From Saccostrea echinata (Eukaryota), in assembly GCF_033153115.1 (NCBI RefSeq), contig NW_026889803.1, forward strand, positions 10,044,001-10,108,000: a stretch of 64,000 bases of DNA. The letters run 5' to 3'. Shown piece after piece: positions 47,401-50,400 of the stretch. Numbering within the stretch: position 1 is the stretch's first letter; the number at the start of each line of letters is the position of its first letter. A program made the position numbers and the translations under genes. The notes below the pieces were generated by a model. That model did not search any database, was not told the DNA's origin, and saw only the letters and a program-made list of their open reading frames with translations.

Positions 47401-50400
47401 CTCTCACGCTCCTTAAGCACTGCTTCAAACCTTTCACGGCGCTCCATTCTCTGAAAAGACACAGAAAGACAAGTTATTCAACTGCATCCGAATTTAAGCA
47501 CAATGGAAAGTTGCATAGGTATTAAAATGTGTTGTACACATGTAGACTATGCTACAAAATAAAATGGAACACTTTTTACCGATTCTTAAAATCATCAACA
47601 ATCATCAATTATACTGTACAATAAAACATTCTTTTATTTCAGCTGACACAAGTCAAAAAGTACACTTAGTGTTATAAGTAATTCCTCTTAAATATTTTAC
47701 ACCACTGCTTATGATTACCTTGACTTTCTGGGCATTTTTAATCAGCATCCTCTTGTGGTTGCGTTGGAATCCAGTGATGATTCTTCGTAGTCTTGTGTTA
47801 AGATCTGAGGATGATGGGAAGGGCAGCTTGTCTTCCTCCATACCCTCTCCACCTTCCAACTTTTCAGTGGGTGGGGCATTAGTTGGAGTAGCTTTTTTGC
47901 TGGACTCGGGTATCGAGCTCATTGACACATCTTCATCATCATCCTGCTTGATTTTGGACTCATCTAAATCGTCACTGTAAAACAAGTCAAACTTCCTCTA
48001 CAGTTTAACTTCTTTCTACTAAAACCACTCCAGAACACAATGGAGACCTGATTTTTATACAAGAACTCTGTCAGTTTGTGCTATTTTCCACTCACAGCAA
48101 CATACAACCAGCACATCTGGTCAATGTATGCCCTCTGTATTAGCATGGCAAGTCATCATCAGTTCAACTTCAGATTCATCATCAAATAGTAAAACTCATT
48201 CAATAATACATTGTACATGTACATATGTAGTAATTTATTACAATTTCAATAGGAAATAATATACACGTACATGTAGTACAATTCATCAGTTCTTGACACA
48301 ACCTAAGAACAAATCACTTACTCGTCATCATCATTTTGTTCAGCTGCTAATGCGGCTCCATCTGGTGGTCCACATTTGCCCAAGAATATCAATGCAGGAT
48401 CCTGTCTCATCATGTTGTATTTCTCATAGCCTGAAAGTTATACATAAAACTGTATAATCAAATGGTATGCTAATCTAAAAAGTATCAAAATTTTGGTTTC
48501 AGTTTCAGGAGGAAAGCTAGCAATGCTTAAAGGACTAATACATCATCAAGTCTTTATGTCTGCATTAAATTTCTGAAGCTTATCCTTACCATGTTTATAA
48601 ACTCCTATAAGGAGGGACTTGTCTGCCTCCTCATCCCACCAGGCAGTGGGAGGGTCTCCATCAGGCTCGGCCTGGGGAATTTCAATATCACTGAAACAAA
48701 CATGCGCCATAGTATAAACATTGAGTAAGCATGTGCATCTGCATTGTAATTTTCATGTAATTTACTTAAAATTATTATTTTTAAAAGCATTAACTTCTGA
48801 ATTCTTTCACTACTTTTCAACTACACTGCACATTACCTTGCATTTAATCCCTGAGTAACTTTTTCAGCTGCTTCAGGTCCAATGATTTCTTCTTTCAGAT
48901 AGTACAATAACCTAACCCTTAGTAGCACTCTGAAAAGAAGAGAGTAAAATTGAATTGTTTGTAGTGTGAAATCTTACTTGTTAGCATGTCTGTGTATATG
49001 TTTATGGTATGAAATCTTGCCTGTGTAGATGTCTGTGGTGTGAAATCTTACTTGTTAGCATGTCTGTGTAGATGCTTGCGGTAGCCTGGGTCTCGTAGCA
49101 CTATTTCTGGATCACAGTTTTTCATTTTGTTGTACTTGAAAAGTTCACTACCACCACTCTCTACTTTCCCCTCTTTCTTTTTGTTTTTGCCTTTCCTTCC
49201 TCGGGGAACAGGAGCAGACAAGCCTGTCATTAACAAGAAATACCATTAATAGCTGAAATCATAATCCTTTGTGCATACTTCTTAAACCCATATCAAAGTT
49301 TGTCAAAGTCCACTAGTATCTGCCATTACCATATCTACAGTCAAAATACCACAGAATGTTTTATTCAAGATGTATGTAACATGATTATATGTTAAGATAT
49401 CTTCAGCAAGTCCACCAGGGAACTCACCTGAGTGGTTTTTCAGGGATCCATCACTTGAAGGTGAGATCAGGTCCCATATAAATTCCTTAATCTTCTCATC
49501 TCCCTTGTACTGTTGCAGGGAATAAATAAGCTGCAAAAGGAATAATTTTTCAATTATTGATCTCTTTCTAAACAATTAAAACTCACTTTTTTTAACTATC
49601 AGTGTAAGCAGATTTCCATTTCTTTTTAATCCTTTTTACCAGTGCTCTAGAAATATTCTCCACATCCTTCTCCACCAACATTTTCTTAAACTTTCCATGG
49701 GACAGGATGTCCTTCCATCTACCCCACCTTTAAACAGAAAATTCTTCCATGTTAACCAAGAGCCATTGATTGATTCAGAGTCATATGAGAATAATGCCTG
49801 TGATAACTTTTAAGAACACTTCACTCATCACTATATTTCTTTTTTGATAACTTAACATGGCTCACCCATAGACAAGAAGGTTTTTCTCCACTTTGAAGCA
49901 ATCAGACCTCCCATAGCCCTCAGCATCATCAGCATCATAATCATCATCGGAGCCCCGTCTTTTTCTGCCTGGTCGTCCTCGCTTCTTCATCCCACTTCTG
50001 GTTTTTCTTGACTCATCGTCATCATCATCACTGTTACTAGACGAGTCTAGGTCAGACATTTCCATCATATTGTCGTCATTCCCATATCTAGTTGTTTGCT
50101 TTCTCTGTCTTGGCTCTTGTATAATCAACTCATTCTGCAGAAAAGATTTTCATTTATATTGTATATTAGAAATTTCATATATCTCCATTTTCGTTATAAC
50201 ACATTTTGTTTTGTCTGCAATAAAGTGACAAGTGACAATTGTATAGGAGTACATGTAAACGAGTGAAACATCTACGTACCTTATGTTTCATTCCCTCCAC
50301 ATCTACATCTGCTTTTTTGGCCCACTTCTGCCAGAAATTTGGATCATTGATGTCAATATCCGTTCTGGTGCCAGACATTGAGAAACTTGCCTGTATGATA

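Follow-up and report, generated by a model that had tools for sequence, protein, structure and literature searches.

Analysis of a 64,000-nucleotide (nt) stretch of the genome of Saccostrea echinata (NCBI RefSeq assembly GCF_033153115.1, contig NW_026889803.1, positions 10,044,001 to 10,108,000 of the forward strand), hereafter the window, to which all coordinates refer unless another locus is named, revealed a box C/D small nucleolar RNA (snoRNA) of 103 nt on the minus strand at 48063–48165. The snoRNA, recognised from its sequence and from Rfam and genome-wide searches, carries a guide of the type directed at A53 of human U6 small nuclear RNA and lies in an intron of a gene for a remodeller of the CHD6-9/kismet type. 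It is very probably a functional, single-copy, intron-encoded box C/D snoRNA and the counterpart of human SNORD8 and SNORD9, whose residence in the CHD6-9 gene is old and has been accompanied by turnover of the host intron.

Architecture of the snoRNA

Read on the minus strand, the snoRNA begins with the 5' half of a terminal stem, GAACT (48161–48165), which pairs with AGTTC at 48067–48063 and is followed by one unpaired G. The C box ATGATGA (AUGAUGA in the RNA; 48153–48159) fits the RUGAUGA consensus and is separated by the spacer CTT from the 11-nt guide GCCATGCTAAT (48139–48149), which is the complement of AUUAGCAUGGC in U6. A single A stands 3' of the guide and, at that distance of one base, is followed by the D' box CAGA (48134–48137), a variant of CUGA. 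Between the D' box and the C'-like box the centroid fold contains a hairpin (48099–48132). The C'-like box GUGAGUG (48089–48095), assigned from the invariant columns of an alignment of homologues (alignment A2) in which the shared motif is UG-N-GUU, lies approximately 14 nt before the D box CUGA (48071–48074), which was read from the sequence and is also present in two close relatives. Three unpaired bases then lead to the 3' half of the terminal stem, AGUUC (48063–48067). The C box, the D box and a terminal stem of 5 base pairs (bp), GAACU/AGUUC, are all in place, and so are the internal D' and C' boxes, both of them degenerate, as is usual for box C/D snoRNAs. The minus-strand layout given in a preliminary description of this DNA (ATGATGA-CTT-guide-A-CAGA...CTGA with pairing ends) reads exactly so; of the span proposed there, 48066–48165, the start stands and the 3' end has to be moved three bases further, to 48063.

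The combination of C box and guide is rare. With up to two mismatches allowed it matched once in the window, against 0.02 matches expected from shuffled sequences, and with up to one mismatch it occurs a single time in the 923-Mb genome. A second guide upstream of the D box was considered as well and was rejected, no segment at that place being conserved across lineages. Directly upstream of the snoRNA, at 48184–48166 on the minus strand, there is a near repeat of the C-box segment (TGATGATGAAT compared with TGATGATGACT) followed by CTGA; the 5' end of the snoRNA may have been partially duplicated in tandem here, or the resemblance may have arisen by chance. It is because of this repeat that families of archaeal small RNAs gave weak matches in the E-value scan.

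Target of the guide in U6

The U6 gene of the same genome (L001, 1501–1609) contains ATTAGCATGGC, and all 11 positions of the guide pair with it. The snoRNA has the arrangement expected of an antisense element, namely at least 10 nt of pairing next to a D or D' box with the target opposite the fifth position: the T at 48142, the fifth nucleotide counted upstream from D', forms a base pair with A55 of U6, which corresponds to A53 of human U6, the numbers being different because the 5' stem-loop of U6 is two bases longer in this animal. Alignment with yeast and human U6 demonstrated that A55 is the A of the AGC triad, within the segment ...TTAGC.... This triad has roles in U4/U6 stem I, U2/U6 helix I and the catalytic triplex (PMC5855946), and human U6 carries a methylated A53 (Am53) that is attributed to SNORD8/9 (mgU6-53) (PMC5855946, PMC7960923). 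SNORD8 and SNORD9 direct the formation of Am53 and reside in CHD8 (PMC6466398, table 3; PMC7960923; PMC5855946); the same target and host had been given in the preliminary description and were confirmed in the first two of these sources. Its prediction of a target in U6 and of a methylation site equivalent to A53 was borne out too, since the 11-nt target is present in the animal's own U6 genes and A55 is the nucleotide singled out by the fifth-nucleotide rule. These U6 genes form long tandem arrays, the period being approximately 2142–2151 bp (G000, C29:39327801–39347187; also C159, C313 and C328), and all 48 of the 48 scored copies obtained an identical score.

Assignment to the snoU6-53 family

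In an E-value scan of 451 nt the best Rfam family was snoU6-53/MBII-28 (RF00377), which matched the snoRNA over its full length with 29.7 bits and an E-value of 1.5e-4, the gathering cut-off of this family being 36 bits, an operational threshold of a model built from vertebrates. Across the 923-Mb genome the locus was the top match of the snoU6-53 model, followed by three weaker matches that lack the guide. The Rfam alignment demonstrated that unpaired consensus positions are shared as well, namely the TT that precedes the guide, the A that follows it and the G-A-G around D'. Furthermore, two defining properties of RF00377 are found here: the guide specifies U6 A53 by its pairing (the target of SNORD8/9 being taken from PMC6466398 and PMC7960923), and the snoRNA is intronic in CHD8 or an orthologue, the host in this case being the single CHD6-9 gene. 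The Rfam scans returned no match in the window for the families of SNORD7, SNORD67, SNORD94 and SNORD10. Where the preliminary description had looked to the Rfam model of U6-53, the expectation held as regards the family and failed as regards the curated cut-off (29.7 compared with 36 bits), so that the phrase 'no Rfam hit' applies in a formal sense only.

Host gene and host intron

The limits of the coding exons seen, judged from open reading frame (ORF) pieces and Pfam matches, place the CHD6-9/kismet-type gene on the minus strand at 37324–59608. Its exons were searched one by one, not as a joined protein model, and single exons matched Chromo (2e-12), SNF2-rel_dom (8.6e-27), Helicase_C (1.7e-14), the tri-helical domain HTH_CHD6-9 (4.4e-34) and BRK (5.7e-16 and 1.2e-8), which is the domain set of CHD subfamily III (CHD6-9/kismet). 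Only one locus in the genome has HTH_CHD6-9, and the host is therefore the unduplicated counterpart, co-orthologous to CHD6, CHD7, CHD8 and CHD9. The host had been described beforehand as the invertebrate orthologue of CHD8; it is a CHD6-9 gene, as that name implied, and, being the sole one and co-orthologous to all four, it is not a strict orthologue of CHD8.

A small exon at 48430–48322, absent from the program-made list of ORFs, was recognised from its translation between the exon at 48690–48590 and the snoRNA. It encodes ...AEQNDDD on the minus strand and is conserved in four of the metagenome loci treated below (L013, L024, L034 and L039). Because this exon is present, the host intron is the segment 48321–47975, an intron of 347 nt on the minus strand that reads GTAAGT...TTTTACAG, and the phases of the flanking exons agree. 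The downstream exon (47719–47974, minus strand) was recognised from its translation and has homologues in five proteins of relatives (P0001–P0005), of which P0005, derived from a spliced transcript, joins the two flanking exons exactly at the junction left by the host intron. Within the intron, 156 nt separate the 5' splice site from the start of the snoRNA and 88 nt separate its end from the 3' splice site, the latter distance being near the range of mammalian intronic box C/D snoRNAs. The designation 'intron 25' used earlier fits 24 coding exons upstream plus one further exon, the numbering as such being dependent on the gene model.

Retention of the 3' half in close relatives

The proteins P0001–P0005, all of exon size, were found by the exon search and have 76–90% identity to the corresponding exons. 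In two of them the reading frame continues into the intron, by which the 3' half of the snoRNA can be followed. Residues 1–19 of P0001 match the translation of 48114–48058 at 15 of 19 positions and keep the codons of the C'-like box and the D box. Residues 1–20 of P0003, in another frame, match at 10 of 20 positions and keep GTGAGT and CTGAC, and the change that P0003 has in the 3' half of the stem still permits a G-U pair. The remaining intron down to the exon is unalignable and measures 63 and 66 nt in the relatives compared with 83 here. Judging from these retained positions, the snoRNA is under constraint relative to the surrounding intron. P0001 and P0003 are public ORF calls, entered as 'hypothetical protein', which start inside the snoRNA and translate its 3' half, and represent an annotation artefact.

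The same guide in metagenome loci

Contigs of JGI metagenomes were scanned with a pattern in which three free bases separate the C box from the guide, which yielded 29 loci; 28 of them are snoRNA-like, and L036 is not. The sequence C-N-G-A stands exactly one base 3' of the guide in 28 of the 29. Outside the search pattern, the C, G and A of the D' box are invariant in 24 distinct homologues, the second base being U, G or A, and the motif UG-N-GUU at the position of C' is common to the homologues (alignment A2). The D box is found 67–107 nt from the C box in the 28 snoRNA-like loci, and hairpins of different sequence occupy the same internal place. As the 3' halves could not be aligned by MAFFT across length classes, the terminal stems were measured by a script; a stem of at least 5 bp was present in 15 of the 17 representative loci tested, with at least seven unrelated stem sequences in which pairing is retained. 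When 17 loci were scanned with Rfam, snoU6-53 was the sole family at E ≤0.01; it matched 15 of the loci, in each case at the position of the snoRNA. The cut-off of snoU6-53 was exceeded in 11 of the 17, with 36.1–48.9 bits, including L034, whose snoRNA occupies the same intron as that of the window.

In several lineages a word of 4–5 nt from the U6 target (TAGCA, AGCAT or GCATG) stands 2–5 nt upstream of the D box (48085–48079 in the window; also L011, L013, L014, L016–L018, L020, L021 and L039), and it could base-pair with the guide inside the snoRNA. The mean length of these words is 3.79 compared with 3.25 in shuffles, the related sequences among the loci not being independent of one another; the effect is too weak for a conclusion.

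Residence in the CHD6-9 gene and turnover of introns

Single ORF pieces of the window's host were compared with the metagenome loci by tblastn, with the snoRNA oriented on the plus strand. It is clear that the host gene is the same in nearly all of them: sense-strand CHD6-9 exons surround the snoRNA in gene order in 26 of the 29 loci, or 26 of the 28 that are snoRNA-like. The exon alignments have 40–86% identity, Pfam searches verified the presence of HTH_CHD6-9 and BRK in four loci, and the gene structures range from those with long introns to those nearly intron-less. Many of the contig names probably come from samples of gutless marine worms, and none of the contigs was regarded as human.

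For comparison of the introns, the exons were labelled a to p in the 5'-to-3' direction, from the helicase region at 51942–52178 to 44434–44724. The snoRNA resides between exons c and d in L011, L019, L022, L029 and L035, between f and g in L018, L030, L037 and L039, and between g and h in L013, L014, L016, L017, L020, L021, L023, L025, L026, L027, L031 and L032. The intron of the window, between l and m, is occupied in L024, L034 and L038, and in L015 and L028 the snoRNA lies between m and o. Some genes hold two copies. L019 and L017 overlap at 99.6–100% identity and represent one gene with copies in introns c/d and g/h that are 85% alike, and L024 and L028, which overlap at 98%, represent one gene with near-identical copies in l/m and the next snoRNA-bearing intron. 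L032 covers both c/d and g/h and has a copy in g/h only; copies must therefore also have been lost. A third, near-identical copy was found in L033, with no recognisable exon within 3 kb. The two-copy genes, which belong to two unrelated lineages, parallel the presence of both SNORD8 and SNORD9 in human.

Proposed course of biogenesis and evolution

By analogy with other intronic box C/D snoRNAs, the snoRNA would be transcribed within the pre-mRNA of the CHD6-9/kismet-type gene and, once the 347-nt intron has been spliced out and debranched, set free from it. Exonucleolytic trimming would then proceed to the terminal stem, and the core proteins, including the methyltransferase fibrillarin, would assemble on the C/D and C'/D' motifs. 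Box C/D snoRNAs in general are stable RNAs of about 70–120 nt to which fibrillarin, NOP56, NOP58 and SNU13 bind. In the nucleolus the guide would pair with U6, and fibrillarin would 2'-O-methylate the nucleotide opposite the fifth position of the guide. In the course of evolution, the guide has been retained in the CHD6-9 gene, its copies being duplicated, moved and lost among at least five introns.

Alternative explanations

Several observations weigh against a functional counterpart of SNORD8/9 that has long resided in the CHD6-9 gene. A scan of the whole window at the Rfam gathering thresholds gave no match, the 29.7 bits of the snoRNA being under the 36-bit curated cut-off of RF00377. The terminal stem is not significant when taken alone, as about one in ten shuffles of the flanks equals it, and such weak standalone significance is normal for terminal stems so short. 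The snoRNA is known here from sequence alone, its expression and the methylation of U6 being predicted, and the view afforded by the relatives, which depends on the ORFs P0001 and P0003 running into the intron, covers the 3' half alone. The identity of the C box and the guide across the metagenome loci was fixed by the search pattern and hence is not evidence, and the comparison with human was made at the level of the host gene. Furthermore, the host is not universal: in L012 (1225–1335, plus strand) the intron that carries the same guide belongs to a SMARCC/BAF155/moira-like gene and is preceded by SWIRM exons and followed by a SANT-like exon. L012 is the one clear case outside a CHD6-9 gene, and its host is again a chromatin-remodelling subunit.

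Some of these points would suit a decaying or silent relic that has lost its processing or its ability to direct methylation, for instance on account of a D' box that reads CAGA and not CUGA; the score under the Rfam cut-off, the non-canonical D' and C' boxes and an expression that is predicted all agree with such a state. The guide is, however, intact (11/11) and is the sole copy in a genome whose U6 keeps the target, CAGA and CGGA serve as D' boxes in other lineages with otherwise intact snoRNAs, and C', D and the 3' stem have persisted in the two relatives despite a diverged flanking intron, so that a relic is very unlikely indeed. AT-rich introns often contain short box motifs, and a second TGATGA...CTGA string is found directly upstream at 48184–48170, from which one might suppose that box-like strings and an accidental complement of U6 met here by chance. 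That supposition has a negligible probability in view of the 0.02 matches expected per window, the uniqueness of the match in 923 Mb, the presence of the guide in the same gene in human and in 26 other loci, and the 11 loci that pass the Rfam cut-off. The element may, finally, be a real U6-A53 guide which reached the CHD6-9 gene of protostomes and CHD8 of vertebrates by convergent insertion. The mobility of snoRNAs, the difference in the occupied intron between lineages, the SMARCC-like host in L012 and a comparison with human made at gene level would all be compatible with convergence. Yet the gene is the same in 26 of 28 loci of several very different gene structures, and that one gene among tens of thousands should have been hit repeatedly and independently is very unlikely; agreement with the vertebrate consensus extends to unpaired positions on which the target exerts no constraint (TT ahead of the guide, A behind it, G-A-G around D'), and 11 loci pass a model built from vertebrates. 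Convergence is consequently regarded as very improbable.

The association of the guide with the CHD6-9 gene is best explained by common descent: it would be older than the vertebrate gene duplications and most likely predates the protostome–deuterostome split. As to the age of the pairing of snoRNA and host, the proposal of the preliminary description is strongly supported by the 26 of 28 snoRNA-like metagenome loci in CHD6-9 genes.

Other features of the window

Two more box C/D-like elements are present in the same host gene, at 51925–51845 and 51155–51070 on the minus strand, in the introns after exons a and c. Both consist of ATGATGA, 4–5 nt, a common 13-mer, TCAAGCCAACTCA, and CTGA approximately 75 nt further on; a search of the 29 metagenome loci that allowed up to two mismatches found no match to this 13-mer. 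On the same strand the CHD6-9 gene is followed by a gene of the retinoblastoma family at 22995–26281 (Pfam DUF3452, RB N-terminal, 4.4e-20).

Significance of the snoRNA–host pairing

Pairings of snoRNA and host that are common to protostomes and deuterostomes have rarely been documented outside ribosome-related genes, and the nucleotide guided in this case belongs to the catalytic AGC triad of the spliceosome. The literature search retrieved no description of a U6-53 guide in invertebrates or in kismet, nor of a deep association between the guide and the CHD6-9 gene, the older Drosophila snoRNA papers and databases being outside its coverage. FlyBase lists snoRNAs that bear the name of kismet, which are candidate carriers of the guide. 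With the snoRNA, the invertebrate counterpart of CHD8 and CHD7, which are genes studied in connection with autism and CHARGE syndrome, gains a non-coding product. Protein-centred annotation misses this product, as the preliminary description had foreseen, and the calls P0001 and P0003 even translate a part of it.

Human CHD8 binds Staf/ZNF143 and promotes transcription of U6, according to Yuan et al. (2007) as cited in PMC2677868 and PMC5855946. With this link as a basis, the functional coupling of the guide to the remodeller, put forward in the preliminary description, is conceivable by analogy. The occurrence of the snoRNA in the same gene, in different introns and with repeated internal duplication also provides a case in which selection for co-expression can be set against a bias towards local duplication. 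That the guide is kept in the CHD6-9 gene by selection and not by inertia only, the gene being an ancient two-product unit of U6 biogenesis, appears rather doubtful; if true, such a unit would explain why the copies hop among at least five introns and yet almost never leave the gene.

Comparison with known guides and hosts

The closest known systems are SNORD8 (mgU6-53), SNORD9 (mgU6-53B) and mouse MBII-28, which have the same box C/D layout, with the guide directly after the C box and before D'. SNORD8 and SNORD9 share with the snoRNA of the window the target nucleotide, A53 of U6 (A55 here), and the unpaired positions beside the guide, and they are intronic in the same gene family, in CHD8 in human and in the single CHD6-9 gene here (PMC6466398). 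Unlike them, the snoRNA of the window has CAGA and not CUGA as its D' box, its internal part is unrelated, and its 29.7 bits are under the Rfam cut-off; moreover, it is present in one copy compared with two, in a host that corresponds to the unduplicated, ancestor-type gene. SNORD7 (A47), SNORD67 (C60), SNORD94 (C62) and SNORD10 (C77) likewise belong to the box C/D snoRNAs and have U6 as their substrate in the nucleolus (PMC5855946, PMC7960923), whereas they differ from the snoRNA described here in guide, target and host gene (PMC6466398).

A similar relation between host and guide is found in the genes of ribosomal and nucleolar proteins that host guides for rRNA, in which the protein and the intronic snoRNA belong to one pathway, as would CHD8 and the U6 guide. 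As far as the papers citing this work describe it, the link between the protein and U6 has been shown for human CHD8 only, as opposed to the invertebrate CHD6-9/kismet proteins. Previous work had established the family of the snoRNA along with its target and its host in human (PMC6466398); what is added here is the fidelity of the guide to its host gene, maintained together with turnover of the introns in which it resides.

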